Origin: Neoechinorhynchus agilis
Taxonomy: Eukaryota; Animalia; Acanthocephala
Length of the DNA: 64,000 nt
Direction of reading: 5' to 3'
Assembly: GCA_051530055.1 (NCBI GenBank)
Contig: CM121341.1
Span: 19,012,784-19,076,783 of the forward strand
Shown here one piece after another: positions 12,655 through 46,472 of the stretch. Numbering within the stretch: position 1 is the stretch's first letter; each line of letters begins with the position of its first letter. The position numbers were made by a program, and so were the translations under genes. The notes under the pieces were generated by a model. That model did no database searches. It had not been told where the DNA came from and was given only the letters and a program-made list of their open reading frames with translations.

Positions 12655-12994
12655 GGATTCGGGATGTGTCGAATTGAAACGGGTCAAAATGCCCTCGCGG
12701 CAACTTTTAGCAAGAAAAGAGCAACGAACAGGTACTTGCAACACCTTATCTATCACCAAACAGTGTGTCACTCCTTTGCAGACGCAGCAGCAGCCAATGA
12801 TTCAATGCCATAACGGGGTGTCAAAAACCGTCCGATGAAGTCAAAAGCAATTGCTATCCGAAAACCCAAATGCGACTTGGGTTTAAAGCGTTCATCTTCA
12901 TCGTGTTCGTATAGAAAATGCAAAAACCTTATTTCGGCGATTGCAAGCGCTGCCATTGTCTTTTAGACATCAAATAGGATCTATTAAGAAAAAC

Positions 12995-13450
12995 TTAATT
13001 ATATTGGATCATGCGAGTTTTATTGTCTTTCAATTCCTCAGCGTCTTCGACAAGCTCTTTAAGTTTTGCCTTTAGACCCTCTTCGACTTGAATCATTTCA
13101 TCTTTCGATATCCTAACTTTTTTTACACTTCCATGCAACTTGGAATATTCGTTTTTTAATTGTGCCACAGATTTGTCACACAAGTCTTTTGCTAGTTTAG
13201 AAAGTTGTTGACGCCTCTCTCCAGACATTTTTGGTATATGGATAAAAATTGAGTCCGCTTCAGTTCTCGTACTGTACCCAGATCTATCCAAGGCCGATTG
13301 AATCGGTACCATTAAATCGATACTAGGCACCTGAACCATAAATATTGCACTCGGTTGTTTTTCGTGTACCAGTGCAAGCTCGCCCAAACTTTTTATGCTG
13401 CCTGACTTGTTTTTCTTATTCGCAGCACTGTGAGCCGCCCGATCATTCAA
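12995..13450 (-). CDS. MRRF-like: Mitochondrial ribosome recycling factor-like protein, C-terminal exon (5' end unresolved)
   Basis: SLGELALVHEK..IQSALDRSG..IFIHIPKMSGERRQQLSKLAK resembles the RRF motif IPxxxxERRxxLxKxAK, followed by a helical bundle. Confidence 0.6.
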   Translation of the reverse strand: MNDRAAHSAANKKNKSGSIKSLGELALVHEKQPSAIFMVQVPSIDLMVPIQSALDRSGYSTRTEADSIFIHIPKMSGERRQQLSKLAKDLCDKSVAQLKNEYSKLHGSVKKVRISKDEMIQVEEGLKAKLKELVEDAEELKDNKTRMIQYN

Positions 13451-13699: not shown

Positions 13700-14330
13700 T
13701 CCGACATTTTTCCAAGGTTTGGCTTTAAAATCACAAAAATTATAGCGTTATTCTGTGGACTATATAAGTTCGGACAATAGGTACGCTAAATTCGTTTTCC
13801 TGGACTCATTGTCCACTTGAACCTCTAAGCTAGAGTACCGCTGCCCCTTCAATGGTAATTTCAAACTAATGCTGGTTTTATTACCTTCCATCGGTTGAAC
13901 TGAGCAGCTTATTTCCATGGTTTCCATTATCAAACGATTTCGTGAATATGGTTGTACGCTTATCACATATTCGCGCCATCAAAATCAACTTGATGTCCAC
14001 AATTCATCGTATGATTTGATAAAACTTAGAAAGCATCATAAAGCCAACATGCATATCTGTGCTGTGAGATCCTTTTGCTGAGTCCCTGTTTGGTCTGTCC
14101 CACATATTTGGCTGGGCAGTCTTTGTAGTGGACCTCGTATACAACTTTATGCTGCTCATATTTTGGCTTTCCAGGCTACGCAAATCCGTCTTAGGTACGA
14201 CTGAATTGCATTGTCTACAAATTTTATCCCTATTTATTTGTGTTTGTCATTCTCAGTACATGTCAGGATTTTTTTCTCGTTTGTGGAAAGCTCTTCTTAT
14301 CGCCAATTCGGGATAGCCAATCGCTCTCAG
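13700..14330 (-). mobile_element. Degenerate Penelope GIY-YIG remnant
   Basis: Reads KVVYEVHYKDCPAKYVGQTKQGLSKRISQH...HTMNCGHQVDFDGAN, then RNRLIMETMEI..PMEGNK, with stops. Confidence 0.8.
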
Positions 14331-14429
14331 AGTTTGAGTAATGGAACGTATTTCAGCTTGTCGTAACCTGTATGCTGAGCATATTTTATGGGCTCTCAGA
14401 AAAAGGGATACTGCTGCAGATATGTTATA

Positions 14430-14900
14430 TAAGATATTAATGATACGCTTAATTATCCCGCTGAATATTTAAACAGACTTACGCCTTCAGGAATATCACC
14501 ACATTGCTTGACCTTAAAAAAAGGAGCAATAATAATTATGCTTTGAAATTTAAATAAGGATAAAGGACTATAAATGGCATTCGCCCCATCGTAATAGATA
14601 TTATGATGCACTCAATAAAAGCCAAAGTTATTTCGGAAAGGAACTAAGGAGAAGTTTTGATACCTCGTATAACTCTTCAAACAAAGTGACACCATTTTAC
14701 CATTTACTTTAAAGCGGCGGCAGTTTCCTATTATTCCAGAATTGGCAATTACTATTAATAAGTCGCAAGGGCAAACATTTGAAAATCTAGCAATTGATTT
14801 ACAAACGTCAATCTTCTCTCGTGGACAACATTAGCTCACACTGTGACGTTCTAGAAATCCAAACAATGTCAAAATACAAATAAGAGATACTCGGTAACAA
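14430..14900 (+). mobile_element. Helitron PIF1-like helicase C-terminal remnant
   Basis: NYPAEYLNRLTPSGISPHCLTLKKGAIIIML*NLNKDKGL*NG..IPRITL..LKRRQFPI..LAITINKSQGQTFE..FSRGQ. Confidence 0.88.
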
Positions 14901-15630
14901 CGAAAAGTACTAAATGATCAGTCAGAATTTACAAGAAATGAAGTTTTCAAAAAGTACTTCAAGAAAATAATAATCCGAAATAACCAGTCCGTAGAATAAC
15001 GCTAATGTTCGTGTTTTAGATGACAAACCTTGATAGTGTCGAAATTATCCGACGTGAAATATCGGAAATAAACTAGTGAATTTAAATCCGTTGTGGCAAA
15101 ACTACCAAAAGAAAACAGGAAATTATGGAATCTTACAAAATAAAAAATTGAATTCTTCCAAAAATGAAAGCAAAGACACCCGAATAGCTTCGATCGATGC
15201 AATGCTCACCCGTAAAGTAACGTTGTTATCTAAGACTTCTTTCAAGTGATTAAGGATTCGCTGCGATCTACCTAGAAAATCATCATAATGCGGAATAAAA
15301 GAATTAAGCTCAACATCGTTCATGATTCCGACTCGAGCCATCTTCTTCGCAGATCTCGTCGCCACGTTAAATATACGAGTGATCATCCGAACCTGTCGCC
15401 AAACAAAAAAACGATGAAGGCCAATCAAAATGCGGGTTCATATCATTTAGATTCTTTCCGATAAAGGAACTATCGTAACCGTTTCAAATCAATTGTAATT
15501 ATTCAAAAGGGCCACTGTGATCTAGCAGAGACCGAACAATCGGTTGATCGGATGTACAGTAGCAGATCGGTAGGTCGACCTTCACAAGCCCATAAGGCTG
15601 ACCAGCGTAAGACGGTTTGTTTCAGCGATC

Positions 15631-18600
15631 AGTGGAAAGGCACACACGATGGCTATGAATATTTAGCTCTCGTCATTTTTATATAATCCGTGCCATCTCA
15701 TCATCATTGTCTCCTTTACCAACTCCGATTCACAATAGGAAATTGATATCATTTTCATCATCAAGTCGCGATACAAAACAAGTAAAACCTAAGAGTATTT
15801 CTAGTACCCTTTCCCGATATTTTTCTTTTAATAATCGATGGCAAGACGGGAAAAATAAAGTTGACTGATCTCTTAGAAGCGATTTTGGGAAGAAAAGATT
15901 TAAAAGTTTACAATTCAACTTTGTCGCATAGTTGGAAAATCGATTATTTTAGGAATGGTTCTATGACTAAGCGATTCGCTGTCTCCAAACGAAGTAGCTA
16001 AAACCTTACCAAAGACCTGATGAATCCAAGAATTTTTAAGGCACGCAAACACAATGATGCGATTGCCTGCCATTTTTCTATTACCTAAGATAGAACGATA
16101 TTGGGAGAAAAAGGTGGCGAGAAATCTCGGAAAAAACAATCGTCTTGAACGGTTGAAGAACTCATTATTTAATATGTTGTAGCAACGTAGGCAGTTACCG
16201 TGATCCGGACATTCCGAAAACAAATAATAAGAATTCCAAAATTTTAAATGTTTGATCTTCGGGAATCCCGTTGCTCGGATTCTATTTTGATTTACCAGAG
16301 TTAGAGTGGAATCTTAAATAAAACTAGATCCCGAATTTCCTGGCTTACTTTGCGTGCCGTGCAAATCTTGATCTCTTTCCGAGTAGCAACATTAACAAAG
16401 ATTCTATTTCGAAATGTCGGAACTAATAGAAGACAAACGAATGTCGAGGGACTCAGTGGAAAGGCACACACGATGGCTATGAATATTTAGCTCTCGTCAT
16501 TTTTATATAATCCGTGCCATCTCATCATCATTGTCTTCTTTACCCACTACGATTCGCAATAGGAAATTGATATCATTTGCTTTATCAAGTCGCGATACAA
16601 AACAAGTAAAACCCAAGAGTATTTCTAGTACCCTTTCTCGATATTTTTCTTTTAATAATCGATTAAAAGACGGGAAAAATAAAGTTGACTGATCTCCTAG
16701 AAGCGATTTTGGAAAGAAAAGATTTAAAAGTTTAATATTCAACTTTGTCGCATAGTTGGAAGATCCATTCCTGTAAGAATGGTACTATGACTTAGCTATT
16801 CGCTGTCTGCTAACGAAGTATCCAAAACCTTACCAAGGACCGGATGATTCCTAGCATTTTTAAGGTACGCAAACACAATAATTCGATTGCCAGCCATTTT
16901 TCTATTACCTGAAGTAGAACGAAATTGGGAGAAAAAGATGGCGAGAAATCTCGGAAAAAACAATCGTCTTGAACGATTGAAGAACTCATTATTTAAGATG
17001 TTGTAGCAACGTAGGCAGTTGCCATGATCCGGACATTCCGGAAACAAATAATAAGAATTCCAAAATTTTAAACGATTGATCTGTGGGAATCCCGTTGCTC
17101 GGATTCTATTTTGATTTACCAGAGTTAGAGTAAAATCTTAAATAAAACTAGATCCCGAATTTCCTGGCTTACTTTGCGTGCCGTGCAAATCTGGATCTCT
17201 TTCCGAGTAGCAACATTAACAAAGATTCTACTTCGAAATGTCGGAACTAATAGAAGACAAACGAATGGCGAGGGACTCAGTGGAAAGGCACACACGATGG
17301 CTATGAATATTTAGCTCTCGTCATTTTTATATAATCCGTGCCATCTCATCATCATTGTCTTCTTTACCCACTACGATTCGCAATAGGAAATTGATATCAT
17401 TTGCTTTATCAAGTCGCGATACAAAACAAGTAAAACCCAAGAGTATTTCTAGTACCCTTTCTCGATATTTTTCTTTTAATAATCGATGGAAAGACGGGAA
17501 AAATAAAGTTGACTGATCTCTTAGAAGCGATTTTGGAAAGAAAAGATTTAAAGTTTACTATTCCACTTTGTCGCATAGTTGGAAGATCCATTCCTGTAAG
17601 AATGGTACTATGACTTAGCTATTCGCTGTCTGCTAACGAAGTATCCAAAACCTTACCAAGGACCGGATGATTCCTAGCATTTTTTAAGGTACGCAAACAC
17701 AATAATTCGATTACCAGCCATTTTTATAATACCTGAAGTAGAACGAAATTGGGAGAAAAAGATGGCGAGAAATCTCGGAAAAAACAATCGTCTTGAACGA
17801 TCGAAGAGCTAATTATTTAAGATGTTGTAGAGAAGTAGGCAGTTGCCATGATCCGGACATTCCGGAAACAAATAATAGGAATTCCAAAATTTTAAACGAT
17901 TTATCTGTGGGAATCCCGTTGCTCGGATTGTATTTTGATTTACCAGAGTTAGAGTAAAATCTTAAATAAAACTAGATCCCGAATTTCCTGGCTTACTTTG
18001 CGTGCCGTGCAAATCTGTATCGCTTTCCGAGTAGAAACATTAACAAAGATTCTACTTCGAAATGTCGGAACTAATAGAAGACAAACGAATGGCGAGGGAC
18101 TCAGTGGAAAGGCACACACGATGGCTATGAATATTTAGCTCTCGTCATTTTTATATAATCCGTGCCATCTCATCATCATTGTCTCCTTTACCCACTACGA
18201 TTCGCAATAGGAAATTGATATCATTTGCTTTATCAAGTCGCGATACAAAACAAGTAAAACCCAAGAGTATTTCTAGTACCCTTTCTCGATATTTTTCTTT
18301 TAATAATCGATGGAAAGACGGGAAAAATAATGTTGACTGATCTCTTAGAAGCGATTTTGGAAAGAAAAGATTTAAAGTTTACTATTCCACTTTGTCGCAT
18401 AGTTGGAAGATCCATTCCTGTAAGGATGGTACTATGACTTAGCTTTTCACTGTCTGCTAACGAAGTATCCAAAACCTTACCAAGGACCGGACGATTCCTA
18501 GCATTTTTAAGGTACGCAAACACAATAATTCGATTGCTAGCCATTTTTCTATTACCTGAAGTAGAACGAAATTGGGAGAAAAAGATGGTGAGAAATCTCG

Positions 18601-21600
18601 GAAAAAACAATCGTCTTGAACGATTGAAGAACTCATCATTTAAGATGTTGTAGCAACGTAGGCAGTTGCCATGATCCGGACATTCCGGAAACAAATAATA
18701 AGAATTCCAAAATTTTAAATGATTGATCTGTGGAAATCCCGTTGCTCGGATTCTATTTTGATTTACCGGAGTTAGAGTGGAATCTTAAATAAAACTAGAT
18801 CCCGAATTTCCTGGCTTACTTTGCGTGCCGTGCAAATCTTGATCTCTTTCCGAGTAGCAACATTAACAAAGATTCTATTTCGAAATGTCGGAACTAATAG
18901 AAGACAAACGCAAGGCGAGGGACTCAATGGAAAGGCACACACGATGGCTATGAATATTTAGCTCTCGTGATTTTTATATAATCCGTGCCATCTCATCATC
19001 ATTGTCTCCTTTACCCACTACGATTCGCAATAGGAAATTGATATCATTTGCTTTATCAAGACGCGATACAAAACAAGTAAAACCCAAGAGTGTTTCTAGT
19101 ACCCTTTCTCGATATTTTTCTTTTAATAATCGATTAAAAGACGGGAAAAATAAAGTTGACTGATCTCCTGGAAGCGATTAAGGAAAGAAAAGATTTAAAA
19201 GTTTAATATTCAACTTTGTCGCATAGTTGGAAGATCCATTCCTGTAAGAATGGTACTGACTTAGCTATTCACTGTCTGCTAACGAAGTATCCAAAACTTT
19301 ACCAATGGCCGGACGATTCCTAGCATTGGTAATCTACGCAAACACAATAATTCGATTGCTAGCCATTTTTCTATTACCTGAAGTAGAACGAAATTGGGAG
19401 ATAAAAAGTTTGCGAGAAATCTCGGAAAAAATAATCGTCTTGAACGATTGAAGAATTTATTATTAAAGATGTTGTAGCAACGTAGCCAGTTGCCATGATC
19501 CGGACATTCCGGAAACAAATAATAAGAATTCCACAATATTAAACGATTGATCTGTGGGAATCCCGTTGCTCGGATTCTATTTTGATTTACCAGAGTTAGA
19601 GTTTAATCTTAAATAAAACTAGATCCCGAATTTCCTGGCTTACTTTGCGTGCCGTGCAAATCTGGATCTCTTTCCGAGTAGCAACATTAACAAAGATTCT
19701 ACTTCGAAATGTCGGAACTAATAGAAGACAAACGAATGGCGAGGGACTCAGTGGAAAGGCACACACGATGGCTATGAATATTTAGCTCTCGTCATTTTTA
19801 TATAATCCGTGCCATCTCATCATCATTGTCTCCTTTACCCACTACGATTCGCAATAGGAAATTGATATCATTTGCTTTATCAAGTCGCGATACAAAACAA
19901 GTAAAACCCAAGAGTATTTCTAGTACCCTTTCTCGATATTTTTCTTTTAATAATCGATGAAAAGACGGGAAAAATAAAGTTGACTGATCTCTTAGAAGCG
20001 ATTTTGGAAAGAAAAGATTTAAAGTTTACTATTCCACTTTGTCGCATAGTTGGAAGATCCATTCCTGTAAGAATGGTACTATGACTTAGCTATTCGCTGT
20101 CTGCTAACGAAGTATCCAAAACCTTACCAAGGACCGGATGATTCCTAGCATTTTTAAGGTACGCAAACACAATAATTCGATTGCTAGCCATTTTTCTATT
20201 ACCTGAAGTAGAACGAAATTGGGAGAAAAAGATGGCGAGAAATCTCGGAAAAAACAATCGTCTTGAACGATTGAAGAACTCATTATTTAAGATGTTGTAG
20301 CAACGTAGGCAGTTGCCATGATCCGGACATTCCGGAAACAAATAATAAGAATTCCAAAATTTTAAATGATTGATCTGTGGGAATCCCGTTGCTCGGATTC
20401 TATTTTGATTTACCAGAGTTAGAGTGGAATCTTAAATAAAACTAGATCCCGAATTTCCTGGCTTACTTTGCGTGCCGTGCAAATCTTGATCTCTTTCCGA
20501 GTAGCAACATTAACAAAGATTCTATTTCGAAATGTCGGAACTAATAGAAGACAAACGAATGGCGAGGGACTCAGTGGAAAGGCACACACGATGGCTATGA
20601 ATATTTAGCTCTCGTCATTTTTATATAATCCGTGCCATCTCATCATCATTGTCTCCTTTACCCACTACGATTCGCAATAGGAAATTGATATCATTTGCTT
20701 TATCAAGTCGCGATACAAAACAAGTAAAACCCAAGAGTATTTCTAGTACCCTTTCTCGATATTTTTCTTTTAATAATCGATTAAAAGACGGGAAAAATAA
20801 AGTTGACTGATCTCCTAGAAGCGATTTTGGAAAGAAAAGATTTAAAAGTTTAATATTCAACTTTGTCGCATAGTTGGAAGATCCATTCCTGTAAGAATGG
20901 TACTATGACTTAGCTATTCACTGTCTGCTAACGAAGTATCCAAAACCTTACCAAGGACCGGACGATTCCTAGCATTTTTAAGGTACGCAAACACAATAAT
21001 TCGATTGCTAGCCATTTTTCTATTACCTGAAGTAGAACGAAATTGGGAGAAAAAGATGGTGAGAAATCTCGGAAAAAACAATCGTCTTGAACGATTGAAG
21101 AACTCATCATTTAAGATGTTGTAGCAACGTAGGCAGTTGCCATGATCCGGACATTCCGGAAACAAATAATAAGAATTCCAAAATTTTAAATGATTGATCT
21201 GTGGAAATCCCGTTGCTCGGATTCTATTTTGATTTACCGGAGTTAGAGTGGAATCTTAAATAAAACTAGATCCCGAATTTCCTGGCTTACTTTGCGTGCC
21301 GTGCAAATCTTGATCTCTTTCCGAGTAGCAACATTAACAAAGATTCTATTTCGAAATGTCGGAACTAATAGAAGACAAACGCAAGGCGAGGGACTCAATG
21401 GAAAGGCACACACGATGGCTATGAATATTTAGCTCTCGTGATTTTTATATAATCCGTGCCATCTCATCATCATTGTCTCCTTTACCCACTACGATTCGCA
21501 ATAGGAAATTGATATCATTTGCTTTATCAAGACGCGATACAAAACAAGTAAAACCCAAGAGTGTTTCTAGTACCCTTTCTCGATATTTTTCTTTTAATAA

Positions 21601-24600
21601 TCGATTAAAAGACGGGAAAAATAAAGTTGACTGATCTCCTGGAAGCGATTAAGGAAAGAAAAGATTTAAAAGTTTAATATTAAACTTTGTCGCATAGTTG
21701 GAAGATCCATTCCTGTAAGAATGGTACTATGACTTAGCTATTCACTGTCTGCTAACGAAGTATCCAAAACTTTACCAATGGCCGGACGATTCCTAGCATT
21801 GGTAATCTACGCAAACACAATAATTCGATTGCTAGCCATTTTTCTATTACCTGAAGTAGAACGAAATTGGGAGATAAAAAGTTTGCGAGAAATCTCGGAA
21901 AAAATAATCGTCTTGAACGATTGAAGAATTTATTATTAAAGATGTTGTAGCAACGTAGCCAGTTGCCATGATCCGGACATTCCGGAAACAAATAATAAGA
22001 ATTCCACAATATTAAACGATTGATCTGTGGGAATCCCGTTGCTCGGATTCTATTTTGATTTACCAGAGTTAGAGTTTAATCTTCAATAAAACTAGATCCC
22101 GAATTTCCTGGCTTACTTTGCGTGCCGTGCAAATCTGGATCTCTTTCCGAGTAACAACATTAACAAAGATTCTACTTCAAAATGTCGGAACTAAAAGAAG
22201 ACAAACGAATGGCGAGGGACTCAGTGGAAAGGCACACACGATGGCTATGAATATTTAGCTCTCGTCATTTTTATATAATCCGTGCCATCTCATCATCATT
22301 GTCTCCTTTACCCACTACGATTCGCAATAGGAAATTGATATCATTTGCTTTATCAAGTCGCGATACAAAACAAGTAAAACCCAAGAGTATTTCTAGTACC
22401 CTTTCTCGATATTTTTCTTTTAATAATCGATTAAAAGACGGGAAAAATAAAGTTGACTGATCTCCGAGAAGCGATTTTGGAAAGAAAAGATTTAAAAGTT
22501 TAATATTCAACTTTGTCGCATAGTTGGAAGATCCATTCCTGTAAGAATGGTACTATGACTTAGCTATTCGCTGTCTGCTAACGAAGTATCCAAAACCTTA
22601 CCAAGGACCGGATGATTCCTAGCATTTTTTAAGGTACGCAAACACAATAATTCGATTACCAGCCATTTTTATAATACCTGAAGTAGAACGAAATTGGGAG
22701 AAAAAGATGGCGAGAAATCTCGGAAAAAAAATCGTCTTGAACGATCGAAGAGCTAATTATTTAAGATGTTGTAGCAAAGTAGGCAGTTGCCATGATCCGG
22801 ACATTCCGGAAACAAATAATAGGAATACCAAAATTTTAAACGATTTATCTGTGGGAATCCCGTTGCTCGGATTGTATTTTGATTTACCAGAGTTAGAGTA
22901 AAATCTTAAATAAAACTAGATCCCGAATTTCCTGGCTTACTTTGCGTGCCGTGCAAATCTGTATCGCTTTCCGAGTAGAAACATTAACAAAGATTCTACT
23001 TCGAAATGTCGGAACTAATAGAAGACAAACGAATGGCGAGGGACTCAGTGGAAAGGCACACACGATGGCTATGAATATTTAGCTCTCGTCATTTTTATAC
23101 AATCCGTGCCATCTCATCATCATTGTCTCCTTTACCCACTGCGATTCGCAATACGAAATTGATATCATTTGCTTTATCAAGTCGCGATACAAAACAAGTA
23201 AAACCCTATAGTATTTCTAGTACCCTTTCTCGATATTTTTCTTTTAATAATCGATGGAAAGACGGGAAAAATAATGTTGACTGATCTCTTAGAAGCGATT
23301 TTGGAAAGAAAAGATTTAAAGTTTACTATTCCACTTTGTCGCATAGTTGGAAGATCCATTCCTGTAGGGATGGTACTATGACTTAGCTTTTCACTGTCTG
23401 CTAACGAAGTATCCAAAACCTTACCAAGGACCGGACGATTCCTAGCATTTTTAAGGTACGCAAACACAATAATTCGATTGCTAGCCATTTTTCTATTACC
23501 TGAAGTAGAACGAAATTGGGAGAAAAAGATGGCGAGAAATCTCGGAAAAAACAATCGTCTTGAACGATTGAAGAACTCATCATTTAAGATGTTGTAGCAA
23601 CGTAGGCAGTTGCCATGATCCGGACATTCCGGAAACAAATAACAAGAATTCCAAAATTTTAAATGATTGATCTGTGGAAATCCCGTTGCTCGGATTCTAT
23701 TTTGATTTACCGGAGTTAGAGTGGAATCTTAAATAAAACTAGATCCCGAATTTCCTGGCTTACTTTGCGTGCCGTGCAAATCTTGATCTCTTTCCGAGTA
23801 GCAACATTAACAAAGATTCTATTTCGAAATGTCGGAACTAATAGAAGACAAACGCAAGGCGAGGGACTCAATGGAAAGGCACACACGATGGCTATGAATA
23901 TTTAGCTCTCGTGATTTTTATATAATCCGTGCCATCTCATCATCATTGTCTCCTTTACCCACTACGATTCGCAATAGGAAATTGATATCATTTGCTTTAT
24001 CAAGACGCGATACAAAACAAGTAAAACCCAAGAGTGTTTCTAGTACCCTTTCTCGATATTTTTCTTTTAATAATCGATTAAAAGACGGGAAAAATAAAGT
24101 TGACTGATCTCCTGGAAGCGATTAAGGAAAGAAAAGATTTAAAAGTTTAATATTCAACTTTGTCGCATAGTTGGAAGATCCATTCCTGTAAGAATGGTAC
24201 TATGACTTAGCTATTCACTGTCTGCTAACGAAGTATCCAAAACTTTACCAATGGCCGGACGATTCCTAGCATTGGTAATCTACGAAAACACAATAATTCG
24301 ATTGCTAGCCATTTTTCTATTACCTGAAGTAGAACGAAATTGGGAGATAAAAAGTTTGCGAGAAATCTCGGAAAAAATAATCGTCTTGAACGATTGAAGA
24401 ATTTATTATTAAAGATGTTGTAGCAACGTAGCCAGTTGCCATGATCCGGACATTCCGGAAACAAATAATAAGAATTCCACAATATTAAACGATTGATCTG
24501 TGGGAATCCCGTTGCTCGGATTCTATTTTGATTTACCAGAGTTAGAGGTTAATCTTCAATAAAACTAGATCCCGAATTTCCTGGCTTACTTTGCGTGCCG

Positions 24601-27600
24601 TGCAAATCTGGATCTCTTTCCGAGTAACAACATTAACAAAGATTCTACTTCAAAATGTCGGAACTAAAAGAAGACAAACGAATGGCGAGGGACTCAGTGG
24701 AAAGGCACACACGATGGCTATGAATATTTAGCTCTCGTCATTTTCATATAATCCGTGCCATCTCATCATCATTGTCTCCGTTACCCACTGCGATTCGCAA
24801 AACGAAATTGACATCATTTGCTTTATCAAGTCGCGATACAAAACAAGTAAAACCCTAGAGTATTTCTAGTACCCTTTCTCGATATTTTTCTTTTAATAAT
24901 CGATGGAAAGACGGGAAAAATAAAGTTGACTGATCTCTTAGAAGCGATTTTGGAAAGAAAAGATTTAAAGTTTACTATTCCACTTTGTCGCATAGTTGGA
25001 AGATCCATTCCTGTAAGAATGGTACTATGACTTAGCTATTCACTGTCTGCTAACGAAGTATCCAAAACCTTACCAAGGACCGGATGATTCCTAGCATTTT
25101 TAAGGTACGCAAACACAATAATTCGATTGCCAGCCATTTTTCTATTACCTAAGGTAGAACGATATTGGGAGAAAAAGGTGGCGAGAAATCTCGGAAAAAA
25201 ACAATCGTCTTGAACGATTGAAGAGCTCATTATTTAAGATGTTGTAGCAACGTAGGCAGTTGCCATGATCCGGACATTCGAGAAACAAATAATAAGAATT
25301 CCAAAATTTTAAATGATTGATCTGTGGGAATCCCGTTGCTCGGATTCTATTTTGATTTACCAGAGTTAGAGTGGAATCTTAAATAAAACTAGATCCCGAA
25401 TTTCCTGGCTTACTTTGCGTGCCGTGCAAATCTTGATCTCTTTCCGAGTAGCAACATTAACAAAGATTCTATTTCGAAATGTCGGAACTAATAGAAGACA
25501 AACGAATGGCGAGGGACTCAGTGGAAAGGCACACACGATGGCTATGAATATTTAGCTCTCGTCATTTTTATATAATCCGTGCCATCTCATCATCATTGTC
25601 TCCTTTACCCACTACGATTCGCAATAGGAAATTGATATCATTTGCTTTATCAAGTCGCGATACAAAACAAGTAAAACCCAAGAGTATTTCTAGTACCCTT
25701 TCTCGATATTTTTCTTTTAATAATCGATTAAAAGACGGGAAAAATAAAGTTGACTGATCTCCTAGAAGCGATTAAGGAAAGAAAAGATTTAAAAGTTTAA
25801 TATTCAACTTTGTCGCATAGTTGGAAGATCCATTCCTGTAAGAATGGTACTATGACTTAGCTATTCACTGTCTGCTAACGAAGTATCCAAAACTTTACCA
25901 AGGGCCGGATGATTCCTAGCATTTTTAAGGTACGCAAACACAATAATTCGATTGCTAGCCATTTTTCTATTACCTGAAGTAGAACGAAATTGGGAGAAAA
26001 AGATGGCGAGAAATCTCGGAAAAAGAATCCTCGTGAACGATTCAAGAATTCATTATTTAAGATGTTGCAGCAACGTGGGCAGTTGCCATGATATGGACAT
26101 TCCGGAAAAAAATTAAAAAATTCCACAATATTAAACGATTGATCTGTGGGAATCCCGTTGCTCGGATTTTATTTTGATTTACCAGAGTTAGAGTTTAATC
26201 TTCAATAAAACTAAATCCCGAATTTCCTGGCTTACTTTGCGTGCCGTGCAAATCTGGATCGCTTTCCGAGTAGCAACATTAACAAAGATTCTACTTCGAA
26301 ATGTCGGAACTAATAGAAGACAAACGAAAGGCGAGGGACTCAGTGGAAAGGCACACACGATGGCTATGAATATTTAGCTCTCGTCATTTTCATATAATCC
26401 GTGCCATCTCATCATCATTGTCTCCTTTACCCACTGCGATTCGCAATACGAATTTGACATCATTTTCATCATCAAGTCGCGATACAAAACAAGTAAAACC
26501 TAAGAGTATTTCTAGTACCCTTTCCCGATATTTTTCTTTTAATAATCGATGGAAAGACGGGAAAAATAAAGTTGACTGATCTCTTAGAAGCGATTTTGGA
26601 AAGAAAAGATTTAAAAGTTTACAATTCAACTTTGTCGCATAGTTGGAAAATCGATTATTCTAAGAATGGTTCTATGACTAAGCTATTCGCTGTCTCCAAA
26701 CGAAGTAGCTAAAACCTTACAAAAGACCTGATGAATCCAAGCATTTTTAAGGCACGCAAACACAATAATGCGATTGCCTGCCATTTTTCTATTACCTAAG
26801 GTAGAACGAAATTACGAGAAAAACGTGGCGAGAAATCTCGTAAAAAACAATCGTCTTGAACGGTTGAAGAACTCATTATTTAAGATGTTGTAGCAACGTA
26901 GGCAGTTACCGTGATCCGGACATTCCGAAAACAAATAATAAGAATTCCAAAATTTTAAATGATTGATCTTCGGGAATCCCGTTGCTCGGATTCTATTTTG
27001 ATTTACCAGAGTTAGAGTGGAATCTTAAATAAAACTAGATCCCGAATTTCCTGGCTTACTTTGCGTGCCGTGCAAATCTTGATCTCTTTCCGAGTAGCAA
27101 CATTAACAAAGATTCTATTTCGAAATGTCGGAACTAATAGAAGACAAACGAATGTCGAGGGACTCAGTGGAAAGGCACACACGATGGCTATGAATATTTA
27201 GCTCTCGTCATTTTTATATAATCCGTGCCATCTCATCATCATTGTCTCCTTTACCCACTACGATTCGCAATAGGAAATTGATATCATTTGCTTTATCAAG
27301 TCGCGATACAAAACAAGTAAAACCCAAGAGTATTTCTAGTACCCTTTCTCGATATTTTTCTTTTAATAATCGATTAAAAGACGGGAAAAATAAAGTTGAC
27401 TGATCTCCTAGAAGCGATTAAGGAAAGAAAAGATTTAAAAGTTTAATATTCAACTTTGTCGCATAGTTGGAAGATCCATTCCTGTAAGAATGGTACTATG
27501 ACTTAGCTTTTCACTGTCTGCTAACGAAGTATCCAAAACCTTACCAAGGACCGGATGATTCCTAGCATTTTTAAGGTACGCAAACACAATAATTCGATTG

Positions 27601-30600
27601 CTAGCCATTTTTCTATTACCTAAGGTAGAACGATATTAGGAGAAAAAGGTGACGAGAAATCTCGGAAAAAAACAATCGTCTTGAACGATTGAAGAGCTCA
27701 TTATTTAAGATGTTGTAGCAACGTAGGCAGTTGCCATGATCCGGACATTCGAGAAACAAATAATAAGAATTCCAAAATTTTAAATGATTGATCTGTGGGA
27801 ATCCCGTTGCTCGGATTCTATTTTGATTTACCAGAGTTAGAGTGGAATCTCAAATAAAACTAGATCCCGAAATTTCCTGGCTTACTTTGCGTGCCGTGCA
27901 AATCTTGATCTCTTTCCGAGTAGCAACATTAACAAAGATTCTATTTCGAAATGTCGGAACTAATAGAAGACAAACGAATGGCGAGGGACTCAGTGGAAAG
28001 GCACACACGATGGCTATGAATATTTAGCTCTCGTCATTTTTATATAATCCGTGCCATCTCATCATCATTGTCTCCTTTACCCACTACGATTCGCAATAGG
28101 AAATTGATATCATTTGCTTTATCAAGTCGCGATACAAAACAAGTAAAACCCAAGAGTATTTCTAGTACCCTTTCTCGATATTTTTCTTTTAATAATCGAT
28201 TAAAAGACGGGAAAAATAAAGTTGACTGATCTCCTAGAAGCGATTAAGGAAAGAAAAGATTTAAAAGTTTAATATTCAACTTTGTCGCATAGTTGGAAGA
28301 TCCATTCCTGTAAGAATGGTACTATGACTTAGCTATTCACTGTATGCTAACGAAGTATCCAAAACTTTACCAAGGGCCGGATGATTCCTAGCATTTTTAA
28401 GGTACGCAAACACAATAATTCGATTGCTAGCCATTTTTCTATTACCTGAAGTAGAACGAAATTGGGAGAAAAAGATGGCGAGAAATCTCGGAAAAAGAAT
28501 CCTCGTGAACGATTCAAGAATTCATTATTTAAGATGTTGCAGCAACGTGGGCAGTTGCCATGATATGGACATTCCGGAAAAAAATTAAAAAATTCCACAA
28601 TATTAAACGATTGATCTGTGGGAATCCCGTTTCTCGCATTCTATTTTGATTTACCAGAGTTAGAGTTTAATCTCCAATAAAACTAAATCCCGAATTTCCT
28701 GGCTTACTTTGCGTGCCGTGCAAATCTGGATCGCTTTCCGAGTAGCAACATTAACAAAGATTCTACTTCGAAATGTCGGAACTAATAGAAGACAAACGAA
28801 TGGCGAGGGACTCAGTGGAAAGGCACACACGATGGCTATGAATATTTAGCTCTCGTCATTTTCATATAATCCGTGCCATCTCATCATCATTGTCTCCTTT
28901 ACCCACTGCGATTCGCAATACGAATTTGACATCATTTTCATCATCAAGTCGCGATACAAAACAAGTAAAACCTAAGAGTATTTCTAGTACCCTTTCCCGA
29001 TATTTTTCTTTTAATAATCGATGGAAAGACGGGAAAAATAAAGTTGACTGATCTCTTAGAAGCGATTTTGGAAAGAAAAGATTTAAAAGTTTACAATTCA
29101 ACTTTGTCGCATAGTTGGAAAATCGATTATTTTAAGAATGGTTCTATGACTAAGCTATTCGCTGTCTCCAAACGAAGTAGCTAAAACCTTACCAAAGACC
29201 TGATGAATCCAAGCATTTTTAAGGCACGCAAACACAATAATGCGATTGCCTGCCATTTTTCTATTACCTAAGGTAGAACGAAATTTCGAGAAAAAGGTGG
29301 CGAGAAATCTCGTAAAAAACAATCGTCTTGAACGGTTGAAGAACTCATTATTTAAGATGTTGTAGCAACGTAGGCAGTTACCGTGATCCGGACATTCCGA
29401 AAACAAATAATAAGAATTCCAAAATTTTAAATGATTGATCTGTGGGAATCCCGTTGCTCGGATTCTATTTTGATTTACCAGAGTTAGAGTGGAATCTTAA
29501 ATAAAACTAGATCCCGAATTTCCTGGCTTACTTTGCGTGCCGTGCAAATCTTGATCTCTTTCCGAGTAGCAACATTAACAAAGATTCTATTTCGAAATGT
29601 CGGAACTAATAGAAGACAAACGAATGGCGAGGGACTCAGTGGAAAGGCACACACGATGGCTATGAATATTTAGCTCTCGTCATTTTTATATAATCCGTGC
29701 CATCTCATCATCATTGTCTCCTTTACCCACTACGATTCGCAATAGGAAATTGATATCATTTGCTTTATCAAGTCGCGATACAAAACAAGTAAAACCCAAG
29801 AGTATTTCTAGTACCCTTTCTCGATATTTTTCTTTTAATAATCGATTAAAAGACGGGAAAAATAAAGTTGACTGATCTCCTAGAAGCGATTAAGGAAAGA
29901 AAAGATTTAAAAGTTTAATATTCAACTTTGTCGCATAGTTGGAAGATCCATTCCTGTAAGAATGGTACTATGACTTAGCTATTCGCTGTCTGCTAACGAA
30001 GTATCCAAAACTTTACCAAGGGCCGGATGATTCCTAGCATTTTTAAGGTACGCAAACACAATAATTCGATTGCTAGCCATTTTTCTATTACCTGAAGTAG
30101 AACGAAATTGGGAGAAAAAGATGGCGAGAAATCTCGGAAAAAACAATCGTCTTGAACGATTGAAGAACTCATTATTTAAGATGTTGTAGCAACGTAGGCA
30201 GTTGCCATGATCCGGACATTCTGGAAACAAATAATAAGAATTCCAAAATTTTAAATGATTGATCTGTGGGAATCCCGTTGCTCGGATTCTATTTTGATTT
30301 ACCAGAGTTAGAGTGGAATCTTAAATAAAACTAGATCCCGAATTTCCTGGCTTACTTTGCGTGCCGTGCAAATCTTGATCTCTTTCCGAGTAGCAACATT
30401 AACAAAGATTCTATTTCGAAATGTCGGAACTAATAGAAGACAAACGAATGGCGAGGGACTCAGTGGAAAGGCACACACGATGGCTATGAATATTTAGCTC
30501 TCGTCATTTTTATATAATCCGTGCCATCTCATCATCATTGTCTCCTTTACCCACTACGATTCGCAATAGGAAATTGATATCATTTGCTTTATCAAGTCGC

Positions 30601-32240
30601 GATACAAAACAAGTAAAACCCAAGAGTATTTCTAGTACCCTTTCTCGATATTTTTCTTTTAATAATCGATTAAAAGACGGGAAAAATAAAGTTGACTGAT
30701 CTCCTAGAAGCGATTAAGGAAAGAAAAGATTTAAAAGTTTAATATTCAACTTTGTCGCATAGTTGGAAGATCCATTCCTGTAAGAATGGTACTATGACTT
30801 AGCTATTCACTGTCTGCTAACGAAGTATCCAAAACTTTACCAAGGGCCGGATGATTCCTAGCATTTTTAAGGTACGCAAACACAATAATTCGATTGCTAG
30901 CCATTTTTCTATTACCTGAAGTAGAACGAAATTGGGAGAAAAAGATGGCGAGAAATCTCGGAAAAACAATCCTCGTGAACGATTCAAGAACTCATTATTT
31001 AAGATGTTGCAGCAACGTGGGCAGTTGCCATGATCCGGACATTCCGGAAACAAATAATAAGAATTCCAAAATTTTAAATGATTGATCTGTGGGAATCCCG
31101 TTGCTCGGATTCTATTTTGATTTACCAGAGTTAGAGTGGAATCTTAAATAAAACTAGATCCCGAATTTCCTGGCTTACTTTGCGTGCCGTGCAAATCTTG
31201 ATCTCTTTCCGAGTAGCAACATTAACAAAGATTCTATTTCGAAATGTCGGAACTAATAGAAGACAAACGAATGGCGAGGGACTCAGTTGAAAGGCACACG
31301 CGATGGCTATGAATATTTAGCTCTCGTCATTTTTATATAATCCGTGCCATCTCATCATCATTGTCTCCTTTACCCACTACGATTCGCAATAGGAAATTGA
31401 TATCATTTGCTTTATCAAGTCGCGATACAAAACAAGTAAAACCCAAGAGTATTTCTAGTACCCTTTCTCGATATTTTTCTTTTAATAATGGATTAAAAGA
31501 CGGGAAAAATAAAGTTGACTGATCTCCTAGAAGCGATTAAGGAAAGAAAAGATTTAAAAGTTTAATATTCAACTTTGTCGCATAGTTGGAAGATCCATTC
31601 CTGTAAGAATGGTACTATGACTTAGCTATTCGCTGTCTGCAAACGAAGTATCCAAAACTTTACCAAGGGCCGGATGATTCCTAGCATTTGTAAGGTACGC
31701 AAACACAATAATTCGATTGCTAGCCATTTTTCTATTACCTGAAGTAGAACGAAATTGGGAGAAAAAGATGGCGAGAAATCTCGGAAAAACAATCCTCGTG
31801 AACGATTCAAGAATTCATTATTTAAGATGTTGCAGCAACGTGGGCAGTTGCCACGATATGGACATTCCGGAAAAAAATTAAAAAATTCCACAATATTAAA
31901 CGATTGATCTGTGGGAATCCCGTTGCTCGCATTCTATTTTGATTTACCAGAGTTAGAGTTTAATCTTCAATAAAACTAAATCCCGAATTTCCTGGCTTAC
32001 TTTGCGTGCCGTGCAAATCTGGATCGATTCTACTTCAAAATGTCGGAACTAATAGAAGACAAACGAATGGCGAGGGACTCAGTGGAAAGGCACACACGAT
32101 GGCTATGAATATTTAGCTCTCGTCATTTTCATATAATCCGTGCCATCTCATAATCATTGTCTCCTTTACACGCTACGATTCGCAATACGAAATTGACATC
32201 ATTTTCATCATCAAGTCGCGAGACAGAACAAGTAAAATCC
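15631..32240. repeat. Tandem array of ~824-bp units: 20 full copies plus a ~160-bp partial copy
   Basis: Anchor A(G/A)TGGAAAGGCACAC at 15631, 16455, 17279, 18103, 18926, 19750, 20573, 21397, 22223, 23047, 23870, 24696, 25520, 26342, 27166, 27992, 28814, 29638, 30462, 31285 (variant AGTTGAAAGG), 32081; units are 822-826 bp and the last full unit is 796 bp. Confidence 0.98.
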
Positions 32241-34403
32241 TACACCACAAGTTGCTCGATGCGAAAAGCCGTAAGAATGAACACTGCATTTTGACGAATC
32301 AGAACAATTTACGTAATCTATAAAATGTGTGGTTTAATGAAATCTTCTAAGCACTGGAATTTAGGTGTGTTTATCGAAATTGCACCGCTGAAGTGGGATC
32401 TTTTTCTCAATATTTTATCAAGCAAGGCTTCAAAGGCACCTTAGATTATTGTAATTTTAATGTTGCCTAGATCGGTTGTTCTGTGGTCTACTAAAGAATT
32501 GCAAACAGAATGGTTTTTACCTCTCAATTAAATGTTCCAAAGGCCTTCTTTGATGCAGCTAATAAATGAAATCGGAAATCTATAACGTTCACTCATGAGT
32601 AAGCAATCATTGGTCATCTTTCGTCCACAGTCCTTTCAGATATTTTTTAAATTTATGTGGGTCTTCAAATGCTCACGATTACGGTTTGCCAGAATGGCAA
32701 AGGTGCTCTTAATATCCATCCGGGTTTCATTCAGCTGGGAAGGGATGCAAACGTGAAATTCACTTTTAAATACTATATCTCCTATTTTCGAACTGTTAAA
32801 TAAACACCATGCTTACTGGCGGTTATAGCGCGTGGGAAAACATTACTCTAAATCATGCATTTCTAATAAAATTCTAAAACAGAAATGCGTTGGAACGTTA
32901 ACTTACCGAACGTCAATTTAGATTTCAATTTGTGCTCTTGCGAAATACTATTTAATTTTGCAGCCGCATGATTGGTCAATTTTTTAATTGACACCTGGGC
33001 AATCTGTTGCAATGATCAGCAATCTACGACGGCGCGTGGAGATGTGAAGTGTGTTAAAGCAGCGACATCGAATAAGAAAGTTCGTCCCGCTTGTTGAGCA
33101 GTTCTAAAGTTTTATCGAGCTGATGTCTAGAACTCGCCGCCGCATTGTCTGCGAAAACGCCATTCCTTCCGCTTCCAACCGTCCGGACATAAGTGGTACC
33201 GAGGATATAGATATTTCTACCGTGCTTTGAACATGGTATGGCCACGATTTTGCGTCCGGATTAAGTGCGTTGCGAACGTGTTCCCTGAAACCTTGACGAA
33301 AAGGCCGTTCATTTTTCCATATCTGTGGATTAACCCGCGATCGTTCGCAGATCATCTCTTAAACCACGTTGCTTCCAGTTCAAATTGAATATTGTTGGCG
33401 ATTTGTGTCCATTGACTTTCTCGGTACGTACACGCACATCAAGGACGGTGCTGTACATATTTCCAGCGTTTCGAGATGTCCATTTCTCGTCAGGATTCGC
33501 CTAAATGTAGGCGCGCTTCTGTGGACAGCGATTCTCAAGATTATATATATCGGTGAAAATTTCACTAGCGACGTCCGAAAGGTGCTTCTACGATCGAGAA
33601 TGGGTGCCCGGATTGTCCAAACGCCGGAAATATGTACAGCATCGTGCCTTGGGAATTCCGTGGACACAAAAGATTGTAGAAACTTTCTCGTGAGTGGTAT
33701 ATCTACTAGAGTTCGAAATATCATCGTTTCATTTTTTTCAAAACACGAATTCTGTAATTGTGGATATTCTTAAGCAGCTTTCAGTTAAAGACATTTCAAT
33801 AGCAAAGGGATATTGTTCCCGATTATATATGAAACTAAATTCCACAGTACCTCATGTAAGATTGGTCCCTGAGAACCTCTGTTGCTTTGACTTCATTTTC
33901 TTTGACCAGAAGTAGAGTGGAGACTAGATAAAAAGATAGGATCAAATATTTTCGAAATAGACGATTTTCCTGAATGATTCCGAATCCCATTGCATGTTTA
34001 CCCCATTGGTCCTATGAGAAACCAATTTTACTAAAATTCTGAGAGTTGGTATTATGTTAGATATTAGTGACGAATAGTGTTTAAAAATGAGCAGCAAATG
34101 TATCTTGCTTCAAAGATTTTAAAGCACTAATTTGAGAGTTTGTAACTAAAAATGTTCAACTATCTTCTGGATCGATCGGCACTGTTCAAAAATAAACATT
34201 ATTACTAAAGAGCGGATTCAAAAACTAATCAAAACTGACGGTAAAAAATTGTGACTGTGTTGTGTTTTTTAAGAGACTCGAGATTCGTCCACGGTTAAAT
34301 GTACACAACGGTTGGGGATGAGGAGGAGGACTGATGTTTAAGATGACATCTCACTTAATCACTAAAATAATCTTACCTAAAAGGATTCGATAACTTTTAT
34401 TTT

Positions 34404-35534
34404 TCACGCGAAAATGTTTGTACTGCATCCAATGAATTGTTTTATGGGCTCAAAGTACGACCGTTTCCAACCTTCGGTACAGTTATCTATGAACCGATCA
34501 GGGACGTTTTCTTGTCTTAGCTCAAGGAGGGTGTGGTCTCCTTTATCTAAAAGTCTGATGGTGACTGTGGACATGAGACCATGAGGCCAGTTTCTGAGAC
34601 GCCACTTCATTCGAATACATTCATTTTGTAGTTTTTCAAGAAATTGGCCTTCGACATTACCGTCGTAAAGCACAAAGAATTGTTGGTCGAACTGTTGGCA
34701 ATTGCCTCTGGTCCACATTCTAACCAGATCCGGATCGGTCAGACATTTATAGACAAGATCCATCTCGCACTTGAATTCCTCGCTGATCGAAACTGTGTTC
34801 GTTTCCAGAGCGCCTGAAGAAGTTGCTGTTTGTTCAGTATCGAAAGCGGAATCTCTGGTAAAAAGAACCACCTTTGTTTAAAAAAGATTACGCTTTCATT
34901 CTTAGAGACCTAAAGCTCATATCGAGTAATTCGATCTTGAAGAAGGTAAAAGGATCGAATGACTCGATTCAAGCATGTCACCGTGTTTCTCTTCTTGGTA
35001 TCGATCAACAATTAAATGGACGTCGTTCGATTTCTTAGTGGGCAAGATCAAATCCTTCGCATATTGGAGCAAATCCTCGTGGTACCGCTTGAACAACGGA
35101 ACCAGTGATTGAAATCCTTCCTTCAACACAAACGATCTAACATTGAGATCATCTTCGTCTTGAACATCAGCCCGCACTTCCTTCGTCCAGTCCTTCACGT
35201 CGTGTGTTAGTTCAAAAACGGTCAGTTTTCCCTTGCTGGTTCCACTACAGTCAAAGCTTTCTACTTGGTAAGATATTGTCAAATTCCAATCGAACACAAC
35301 GATCAGCTTTCCTTTTCGATTACACACCATCGAGTCACCCTCCATTAGAGAAACTTCCTCAAACTTACCTCTGAAAAACTTGTTCTCGAACCGGATCGAA
35401 GCAATCGCGCTCTTAAAGAAGTCCTGACTCCACGAATCAGCCGATTTCTCACGCCAATGCCAATTGTTCACATTAACAGAATCGGGCCGATCTTCAACAA
35501 TCCAACGAGGATCACCTTCACCCAAGCGAGCCAT
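34404..35534 (-). CDS. AHSA1: Activator of Hsp90 ATPase 1 (Aha1); two ORF segments joined by one or more short introns in ~34860-35010
   Basis: MARLGEGDPRWIVEDRPDSVNVNNWHWREK is the Aha1 N-terminus; the second segment is the START-like domain (LYDGNVEG..WRLRNWP..GWKRSYFEPIK). Confidence 0.92.
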
Positions 35535-45865: not shown

Positions 45866-46472
45866 TGGCAATAGCAGAAAAATAAAAAGAAGAGCAATTC
45901 ATTGGGTTTATTTAAAGTTTCAATTGAGAAAAGATAGACAGTACGGGTTCTAAGTCTACTTAAAATTATTTCTTTAATACACAATGAGACTAAATCGGTA
46001 AATGTATTCGCTAACATTATCGATCTTTTATACCCCTTTTGTTCCGATCAGAGGTCGAATTATTCAGTAGATAAACGGACATAGCTTCAACAATCATCCT
46101 AGTAATTTAATGGCATGTGTGAGATTTCCTTAGTAACTCAGCTCAATTTTTGATTTACGATTTCACCCCCTCAAGCCATTCAATAAATCGCTTTGTAGAA
46201 TTCCATTCTATGAATTATGTTTTTAAGCATTCATTTAACACCCTCAAACACAGACTATCCTTCTTTTTATTAATTGCCCACGGAGATACAATCGCATCAT
46301 TGGCTGCAAAAACATTTGACCAAAAGTAATTTTATATTATAAAAGTATTGAATCAGCAGTAAAATGCTAATACAGATTGAAACACTTGCAAGTACAAATC
46401 AAAAACTTTTTTTAAAGTGATAAAATAAATCAACATAAACATTACTCCGACCGTCAACTTGGTTCCAAGGTA

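Follow-up and report, generated by a model that had tools for sequence, protein, structure and literature searches.

What is the 16.6-kb tandem array of an 824-bp unit that lies on the largest scaffold of Neoechinorhynchus agilis, approximately 330 kb from the scaffold end? The array was analysed within a window of 64,000 nucleotides. The initial annotation read it as an amplified, decaying protein-coding sequence, that is, a satellite born inside a gene, and named a repeated functional element of unknown type as the fallback. The former reading found no support on any point that could be tested here. The fallback did: the most conserved 90 nucleotides of the unit carry a box C/D snoRNA-like element. 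With a confidence somewhat above even, we interpret the locus as a non-coding tandem array whose unit is centred on an orphan-like box C/D snoRNA gene.

Structure of the array

Repeat detection confirmed a head-to-tail array in the annotated place (15631-32240) and with the annotated unit length; the limits obtained here are 15629/15631 to about 32243. The array (15629..32243, unstranded) consists of 20 full units followed on the right by a partial unit of 162 bp; this agrees with the earlier observation that its two ends are out of phase by about 160 bp. Copies u1 to u11 start at 15629, 16453, 17277, 18101, 18924, 19748, 20571, 21395, 22221, 23045 and 23868, and copies u12 to u21 at 24694, 25518, 26340, 27164, 27990, 28812, 29636, 30460, 31283 and 32079. 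The start-to-start spacing is 822-826 bp, the last full unit being 796 bp long; the copy number is 20.2, and the identity between units is 90-100%. Tandem Repeats Finder missed the array because its longest period is 500.

The array also has a higher-order structure, as the mean identity of units is 0.966 at lag 3 versus about 0.95 at other lags, and a periodicity of three units is seen over parts of its length. Pairwise identities define a block of approximately 2.47 kb present in three copies, u3-u5, u6-u8 and u9-u11 (17277..24693, unstranded), with identities of 99-100% for u5/u8/u11, 99% for u4/u7/u10 and 99% for u3/u9. A second three-unit block is present in two copies, u13-u15 and u16-u18 (25518..30459, unstranded; u13/u16 99%, u14/u17 99%, u15/u18 98%). 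The units u1, u14 and u17 form a distinct subfamily with mutual identity of 97-99%. These are the units at 15631, 26342 and 28814 that the initial annotation had set apart as closest to a coding ancestor; they do stand apart, but not as the nearest to a coding state (see below). The mosaic pattern of variants and the three-unit blocks suggest that unequal crossing-over and gene conversion, acting in steps of one and three units, enlarged the array and maintain its partial uniformity.

The array occupies a single locus. A 30-mer from the unit has 21 exact or near-exact matches in the genome, every one of them within the array. Two unit-specific patterns and an RNA model detected no second locus in the 46.2-Mb N. 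agilis assembly, which comprises 102 contigs (PMC12690905). The array is a satellite in the sense of head-to-tail copies of high identity; it is not one in the strict sense of abundant, multi-locus, heterochromatic or centromeric DNA, which would form numerous arrays or take up much of the genome. A search within the unit for sub-repeats, terminal inverted or direct repeats and inverted repeats returned none of note.

Coding potential

On the minus strand of the consensus unit, one frame stays open for 113 codons, a length reached by only about 3% of mononucleotide shuffles, and in two units an open frame of 183 codons is present. The cheapest reading path on this strand requires 5 breaks per unit versus 8.2 +/- 1.6 in dinucleotide shuffles (P 0.04). 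Taken by themselves, these figures would fit an exon-bearing segment of a gene that was duplicated and is now gaining stops and frameshifts. However, 20% of the intergenic strand-tiles of the same window are equally low in breaks, so the few stops and frameshifts pointed out in the initial annotation are not special; real exons need 0-1 breaks. The density of stop codons, whose comparison with shuffled sequence had been set as a check, is no lower than in dinucleotide shuffles: there are 44 stops per unit on the minus strand (47.9 +/- 4.2 in shuffles) and 49 on the plus strand (52.6 +/- 4.3), and nearby intergenic tiles have about 46 +/- 7. The supposedly ancestral units u1, u14 and u17 carry 45-46 minus-strand stops, compared with 41-48 in the remaining units, and their cheapest paths have 4, 6 and 5 breaks, respectively, that of u10 having only 3.

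The frame of the last unit had been described as continuing into the right flank, where we observed no notable open frame, the best ones having 6-7 stops per 219 codons. The ORF at 15123-15428, taken for a sequence similar to the unit, shows no relationship to the frame of the unit (BLASTP E 6.9). No unamplified copy was found elsewhere in this genome. The 96 variants between units are distributed over codon positions 1, 2 and 3 as 28, 32 and 36, that is, with no position bias, and the synonymous share is 27% versus 22% expected at random. The part of the unit that carries the open frame is its most variable part.

Similarity searches agree with this. Comparison of 15 stop-free unit frames from both strands with Pfam produced chance-level matches only, the recognition score in the protein atlas is low, in the range of non-proteins, and a word-based protein search with a 93-aa frame returned no match. 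An exhaustive phmmer search of 1.84 billion representative proteins yielded two matches, one to a bacterial surface protein of 2560 aa and the other to a repeat protein of 1558 aa. Both were judged spurious and rejected as homologues, since their scores sum over 10-14 repeats at about 35% identity. In view of the ordinary stop density, the equally readable intergenic tiles, the unbiased variants, the empty protein searches, the missing single copy and the high variability of the open-frame part, we consider the origin of the array from a decaying gene fragment very improbable.

Candidate box C/D snoRNA

The candidate element is located on the minus strand and in each copy spans the region from (unit start - 6) to (unit start + 86). 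In u7 (20565..20657, minus strand), taken as the representative, it consists of a terminal stem AGG-A-GAC / GUC-CCU, a C box AUGAUGA, a C'-like box UGACGA, a candidate guide GUGUGCCUUUCC and a D box CUGA. The C box is present as two overlapping copies, and the box-to-box length is 76-79 nt, within the 60-120 nt expected of box C/D snoRNAs between a C box RUGAUGA close to the 5' end and a D box CUGA close to the 3' end. The C'-like box has one mismatch, and there is no recognisable D' box. The terminal stem comprises three contiguous pairs (GAC/GUC), a one-base bulge and three further pairs (AGG/CCU). It is retained in both the minimum-free-energy and the centroid folds; the z-score of the fold is only -1.4, and this predicted fold has the guide partly paired within the RNA. 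The copies differ too little from one another for covariation to be seen.

No other part of the unit matches the strict combination of C box, D box and stem. This combination does not occur on either strand of the remaining 47 kb of the window, and it arises in 2.3% of shuffled units. A relaxed scan of the unit for more box C/D candidates found none. In Rfam, a 161-nt stretch has seven weak matches, five of them to box C/D families, all on the minus strand, and four of the latter place boxes C and D on the same bases. The scores of the element are 15-19 bits, far below the gathering thresholds; the best of them, 18.8 bits for snoZ152 (cut-off 50) and 18.2 bits for SNORD45 (cut-off 42), do not make it a member of a curated family. 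At gathering scores Rfam reports nothing in the entire window, and there are no tRNAs. A covariance model of the element, run over the genome, recovered only the 21 array copies and one chance-level AT-rich match.

The candidate guide is predicted to form 12 base pairs, two of them G-U, with the 18S rRNA segment GGAGGGGCACAC (L004 1475-1486), the pairing beginning at the second nucleotide upstream of box D. For a 12-bp guide placed correctly relative to box D, comparison with shuffles gives P 0.026. A methylation guide is expected to pair over 10 or more bp up to box D or D', and its target base is the one opposite the fifth nucleotide upstream of the box. Here the predicted target nucleotide, a G at L004 position 1478 (about SSU position 1187), would be paired as G-U, an uncommon arrangement in methylation guides, and this 18S position is not known to be a conserved methylation site. 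A SNORD45-like D' guide to the 18S segment GCUAAUACAUGCC is not claimed, as its pairing has two mismatches and the D' box is absent. To judge by these motifs, the RNA may be made, processed to a stable form and bound as a snoRNP, for which the proteins would be fibrillarin, Nop56, Nop58 and Snu13.

Conservation within the unit

Among the 90-nt windows of the unit, the one that coincides with the element has the lowest diversity (pi 0.012 versus a mean of 0.053, rank 1/824), and of the invariant runs, those second and third in length fall within the element. Boxes C and D and the guide are intact in 16 of the 21 copies. Among the damaged elements, that of u5 (18918..19010, minus strand) has the D box changed from CUGA to UUGA and the C'-like box from UGACGA to UCACGA; the same changes are found in u8 (21389-21481) and u11 (23862-23954), both on the minus strand. 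In the partial unit u21 at the edge of the array (32073..32165, minus strand), the C box AUGAUGA became AUGAUUA. The low diversity over the element could reflect local homogenisation instead of selection.

A stretch of 41 nt is identical in all 20 of 20 units (21270..21310 on the minus strand in the representative unit). It is situated 85-125 nt downstream of the D box and contains a splice-donor-like motif AAA|GTAAGC. An acceptor-like motif UUUGUCUUCUAUUAG is found approximately 30 nt past the D box, and these two motifs bound a possible 74-nt exon in each unit. A scan for structured RNA marked a hairpin-rich stretch at consensus positions 481-660, without covariation.

Genomic context

On the minus strand, the array is preceded by an AHA1-like gene with Aha1_N and AHSA1 domains (34404..35534, minus strand) and followed by an exon of a gene similar to the mitochondrial-type ribosome recycling factor, RRF (12995..13450, minus strand; PF01765, E 1.5e-11). 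The latter gene has a single locus in the genome, with one exon only detectable. The snoRNA-like element is on the same strand as both flanking genes.

The 117 bp that adjoin the left end of the array (15513..15629, plus strand) are 100% identical to C1:11067246-11067362, which lies 8 Mb from the array within an open frame of 174 codons, and share a 1-nt microhomology with the array at the junction. This segment is likely to be filler DNA from a recent break repair. The ends of the array are then probably out of phase because the left end was cut by a recent break and repaired with this filler. A template-switch retro-chimera was ruled out as the source of the exon fragment at this junction, since its orientation is antisense to that of the snoRNA-like element.

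The region around the array is rich in near-identical segmental duplicates, and assemblies often mis-size regions of this kind. Together with the perfect identity of the left-junction segment to a distant locus, this might suggest that the copy number or the junctions arose as artefacts when the long reads were assembled by the hybrid procedure. However, units diverge by up to 10% and form a structured mosaic with a three-unit pattern, which collapse or over-expansion would not yield. Moreover, length-filtered ONT reads were used to build the assembly (PMC12690905). Of all the explanations considered, an assembly artefact seems to us the least credible.

Discussion

The proposed structure is a locus-specific, non-coding tandem array (a macrosatellite) that would carry one box C/D snoRNA-like gene per unit on the minus strand. 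The main rival is a plain non-coding macrosatellite without a functional element, its box C/D-like motif having arisen by chance or survived as a dead relic, and its dip in diversity reflecting the placement of conversion tracts. This is a serious possibility, although we rate it clearly lower. It agrees with the weak Rfam scores and the weak terminal stem, and with a guide in which two of the pairs, including that at the target position, are G-U. It would also account for the amplification of three copies of one higher-order position despite the destroyed D box and for the longest invariant stretch (41 nt) lying outside the element. On the other hand, three roughly independent rare features coincide on the same 90 nt, their probabilities being 2.3% for the motif, 2.6% for the guide and about 2-3% for the diversity minimum, and the genome demonstrably has snoRNA genes in tandem rows.

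An origin of the array from a transposable element, for instance by unequal exchange that multiplied an internal or a terminal segment of a retroelement, is quite improbable. A search of the genome with the whole unit revealed only one similarity outside the array, 78 bp with 79% identity at C2:9638057-9638134 on another scaffold, in repeat-rich DNA approximately 3 kb downstream of a remnant of an LTR-retrotransposon integrase. However, this match covers less than 10% of the unit, no transposable element protein domain is seen in any frame, the unit lacks terminal repeats, inverted or direct, and the genome contains no dispersed single copies of it. No snoRNA-like partner was found at the 78-bp match.

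Among known systems, the closest in space is an array of 142-bp units of the SNORD74/snoR44_J54 type, 9 kb beyond the window and in the same subterminal region of the scaffold. It contains clear box C/D snoRNAs, with a match to snoR44_J54 of 41 bits (E 1.7e-6) that is itself below the 48-bit cut-off of this family. As in the 824-bp array, the tandem snoRNA arrays of N. agilis are formed by head-to-tail units with a box C/D element, and both intact and damaged copies are present. The likeliest assignment of the 824-bp array is another member of this set. However, it is atypical as a row of snoRNAs, having a 745-bp spacer per element and a guide of no recognised family. In the other arrays the unit length is 140-1120 bp and a snoRNA occurs every 110-230 bp, compared with one element per 824 bp here, and their guides match Rfam families at 35-41 bits, whereas the element of the 824-bp unit is weak and has neither a family nor a known target site.

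In the mammalian SNORD115 and SNORD116 clusters, a non-coding host gene is made of tandem units, each with an orphan box C/D snoRNA in an intron; the short non-coding exons on either side are spliced from unit to unit. The similarity to the present array is in the kilobase-scale units, each with one box C/D snoRNA or snoRNA-like element that has no canonical rRNA target, and in the non-coding spacer; the donor-like and acceptor-like motifs around the possible 74-nt exon of each 824-bp unit would extend it, splicing being only putative. By analogy, the array might be an expressed non-coding host gene, each unit being a short exon and an intron that releases an orphan box C/D snoRNA. We regard this layout as unlikely. 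There is no sequence relationship between the two systems, and the acceptor-like site of the 824-bp unit is only approximately 30 nt past the D box. Human macrosatellites DXZ4 and D4Z4 resemble the array in having a single locus, a long unit, a few tens of copies and a higher-order substructure from unequal exchange. They differ in that their units are larger and some contain an ORF (DUX4 in D4Z4), while the 824-bp unit has no supported ORF.

Thus the story of a satellite born from a gene is removed as unsupported, and a testable reading of the locus as a snoRNA array is offered instead. If no such RNA is produced, what is left is an ordinary locus-specific macrosatellite. If the host-gene layout holds, an arrangement of the SNORD115/116 type, with a lineage-specific guide, would have been invented independently in a rotifer-related parasite. 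In the compact 46-Mb genome of this parasite, many guide-RNA genes are arranged in satellite-like rows, among which the 824-bp array, as one more snoRNA row, would have the longest spacer and the least conventional guide. Provided that the RNA is made, the locus would be a natural system for the origin, homogenisation and decay of tandem snoRNA arrays in a non-mammalian animal.

Array structure and genomic setting

A repeat search of the window confirms the tandem array described in the initial annotation, with about 20 head-to-tail copies at a start-to-start spacing of 822-826 bp; Tandem Repeats Finder, which stops at periods of 500, misses them for that reason alone. When the 824-bp consensus unit is aligned back to the flanks, the limits are sharp, with a start at 15629-15631 and an end at about 32243. 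The right end consists of 162 bp of a 21st unit, and this confirms the earlier remark that the ends are out of phase by about 160 bp.

The units are 90-100% identical (mean 95%), and those three positions apart resemble each other more closely (0.966) than those at other lags (about 0.95). Numbered in succession, u5/u8/u11, u4/u7/u10, u3/u9, u13/u16 and u14/u17 are 99-100% alike. Therefore, parts of the array were recently duplicated as 2.47-kb blocks. The matrix of variants across units is a mosaic, as expected under unequal exchange and conversion.

In the whole assembly (102 contigs, 46,219,100 bases, as published in PMC12690905), two unit-specific patterns and a unit-derived RNA model match this array only. 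Thus the array is a single-locus repeat and not a dispersed satellite family. The sole unit-like sequence outside it, 78 bp with 79% identity to consensus positions 196-272, lies in the opposite orientation on another scaffold, C2 (C2:9638057-9638134; positions 5058-5135 of the stretch L001), about 3 kb downstream of the remnant of an LTR-retrotransposon integrase (L001 334-1988). Pieces of 50 nt in the surrounding DNA recur in other tandem arrays.

The window is subterminal on the largest scaffold (C1, 19.4 Mb), about 330 kb from its end, in a region that holds rDNA copies, segmental duplicates and retroelements. The array, either intergenic or within a long first intron, lies between an AHA1-like gene upstream (34404-35534, minus strand) and an RRF-like exon downstream (12995-13450, minus strand; a single exon of this gene is detectable). 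To its left are three short-chain dehydrogenase (adh_short) paralogues in a row (1745-2722, 9424-10449 and 11638-12771, all minus strand). Two open frames for hexokinase, each 385 aa long (37732-38889, plus strand; 48085-49242, minus strand), with identical Pfam scores, inverted orientation and a reverse-transcriptase ORF between them (44971-46017), are a recent inverted segmental duplication. On the plus strand, an Exo_endo_phos endonuclease ORF (58905-59744) is followed by a reverse-transcriptase ORF (60990-62078), as is usual in non-LTR retroelements.

Coding potential of the unit

The initial annotation read the array as amplified, decaying protein-coding sequence, and this is not upheld. 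Over three frames the consensus has 44 stops on the minus strand and 49 on the plus strand, compared to 47.9 +/- 4.2 and 52.6 +/- 4.3 in dinucleotide shuffles (P about 0.2 on both strands) and about 46 +/- 7 in intergenic tiles of the window. Compared with simple shuffles, both strands show the same apparent depletion of stops, which is thus a dinucleotide effect. The longest consensus open frame has 113 codons, a length reached by only about 3% of mononucleotide shuffles, and two near-identical units have a frame of 183 codons. If frame changes are allowed, the cheapest reading path on the minus strand has 5 breaks per unit versus 8.2 +/- 1.6 in shuffles (P 0.04); equally few are found in 11 of 54 intergenic strand-tiles, and real exons of the window have 0-1.

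The 96 between-unit variants in the 113-codon frame are distributed over codon positions 1, 2 and 3 as 28, 32 and 36, with 27% synonymous (random change would give 22%), and some indels there shift the frame. The frame-bearing middle (consensus 240-640) is the most variable part of the unit. No unit frame on either strand matches Pfam, a word-based protein search found nothing, and the atlas recognition score is 1050, well under the 2300 attained by 91% of known-family proteins. Searched exhaustively with phmmer, 1.84 billion representatives yielded two matches only, both to long repeat proteins. We reject these as spurious, since each score is a sum over 10-14 short segments that are about 35% identical.

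The related claims fare no better: the left-flank ORF said to resemble the unit is unrelated to it, the right flank contains no open frame, and the three units thought closest to a coding ancestor form one subfamily with no fewer stops than the others. A very old or lineage-specific coding origin is conceivable, but nothing supports it.

Candidate box C/D snoRNA

The alternative offered in the same annotation, a repeated functional element, is plausible, as a box C/D-like motif lies in the least diverse 90 nt of the unit. Diversity is lowest at consensus 819-824 and 1-85 (pi 0.012 versus a mean of 0.053, rank 1 of 824 windows), which also includes the second and third longest invariant runs. 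The unit's only strict box C/D candidate coincides with this segment on the minus strand (for example, 20565-20657 in u7), and the same scan finds none on either strand of the other 47 kb of the window. In the candidate, the stem AGG-A-GAC leads into the C box AUGAUGA; about 66 nt with a C'-like UGACGA follow, then the guide GUGUGCCUUUCC, a single A, the D box CUGA and the closing stem half GUC-CCU. The predicted guide forms 12 bp, including two G-U pairs, with 18S rRNA GGAGGGGCACAC, and this pairing begins at the second nucleotide upstream of box D. Five of seven weak Rfam matches on a 161-nt stretch belong to box C/D families and lie on the minus strand (11-19 bits only), and four of these five place box C and box D on the same bases.

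We consider it somewhat probable that the array is a single-locus, non-coding tandem repeat whose copies, each with a box C/D snoRNA-like gene at its core, are maintained by unequal exchange. The main other possibility, an inert motif, we regard as less likely. Points of caution are the weak terminal stem, the lack of a D' box, a fold z-score of -1.4, and a predicted 18S target base that would fall in a G-U pair, at a site not known to be a conserved methylation site. Both boxes and the guide are intact in 16 of 21 copies; the D box is changed to UUGA in three copies, all of one higher-order position, one copy has guide changes, and an edge copy has a damaged C box. A strict candidate arises in 2.3% of shuffled units, and 12 bp in box-D geometry is reached by 2.6% of shuffled guides. 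As three roughly independent features at the level of a few percent fall on the same 90 nt, we prefer a real snoRNA-type element over chance, on sequence grounds and allowing for its having been sought post hoc.

The other 745 bp contain no sub-repeats, terminal repeats, further snoRNA candidates or notable Rfam matches. Consensus 481-660 is rich in hairpins (fold z of -2 to -3.4 for either strand) and shows no covariation. Among these hairpins is a perfect one of 8 bp, CAATCGTT-CAA-GACGATTG, which is followed by TTTTTT and lies about 300 nt downstream of the candidate snoRNA (21079-21097, minus strand, and the same place in most other units). A 41-nt run, 85-125 nt downstream of box D, is identical in 20 of 20 units, occurs nowhere else and includes AAA|GTAAGC, which resembles a splice donor. 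A pyrimidine tract with a terminal AG, similar to a splice acceptor, is found 20-30 nt after box D. Speculatively, these motifs could delimit a 74-nt exon per unit, recalling the layout of the mammalian SNORD115/116 host genes.

Array ends

The left junction coincides with the final base of the D box in the snoRNA-like element, and the 162-bp phase difference leaves 21 snoRNA-like elements and 20 spacers. The 117 bp just outside (15513-15629) are 100% identical to C1:11067246-11067362 (L013 1747-1863), 8 Mb away, within a 174-codon open frame that ends at GAG|GTATGT and has the sense opposite to the element; microhomology at the junction is 1 nt. Since units differ by up to 10% and this patch is perfect, it is much younger than the array. 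We read it as probable filler DNA, inserted when a recent break was repaired and the array was trimmed; this would be an ordinary explanation of the out-of-phase ends. An assembly chimera is less likely.

Further left, a 1.1-kb stretch (14252-15362) has 99.2-99.6% copies 63 kb rightward, inverted (L014 1215-2325, C1:19077998-19079108), and 15 kb left of the window (L015 1998-2711). A high-copy dispersed repeat of about 135 bp at about 14980-15115 has dozens of genome matches (79-91%). On the right flank, unique sequence extends for 690 bp before a dispersed repeat begins.

Neighbouring snoRNA array

At 9 kb beyond the window end, a 142/286-bp tandem array (C1:19085552-19090916, L005 2053-7417) contains about 33 box C/D snoRNA genes and shows that this genome does have tandem rows of snoRNAs. 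The genes score 34-41 bits against snoR44_J54/SNORD74 (E as low as 1.7e-6), under the Rfam gathering score of 48, and thus curated cut-offs miss real snoRNAs in this lineage. The element of the 824-bp unit is a far poorer match to known families.

Both 18S copies (L004 1466-1500, L002 2686-2720) read GACGGAGGGGCACACCAGAAGUGG, whereas the usual eukaryotic sequence at that position is GACGGAAGGGCACCACCAGGAGUGG; this would be a lineage-specific variant in a very conserved helix.

The array belongs to known kinds, macrosatellites and tandem snoRNA arrays, and its significance is modest unless the snoRNA-like RNA proves to be expressed; it would be another tandem snoRNA row of this genome, with an unusually long spacer.
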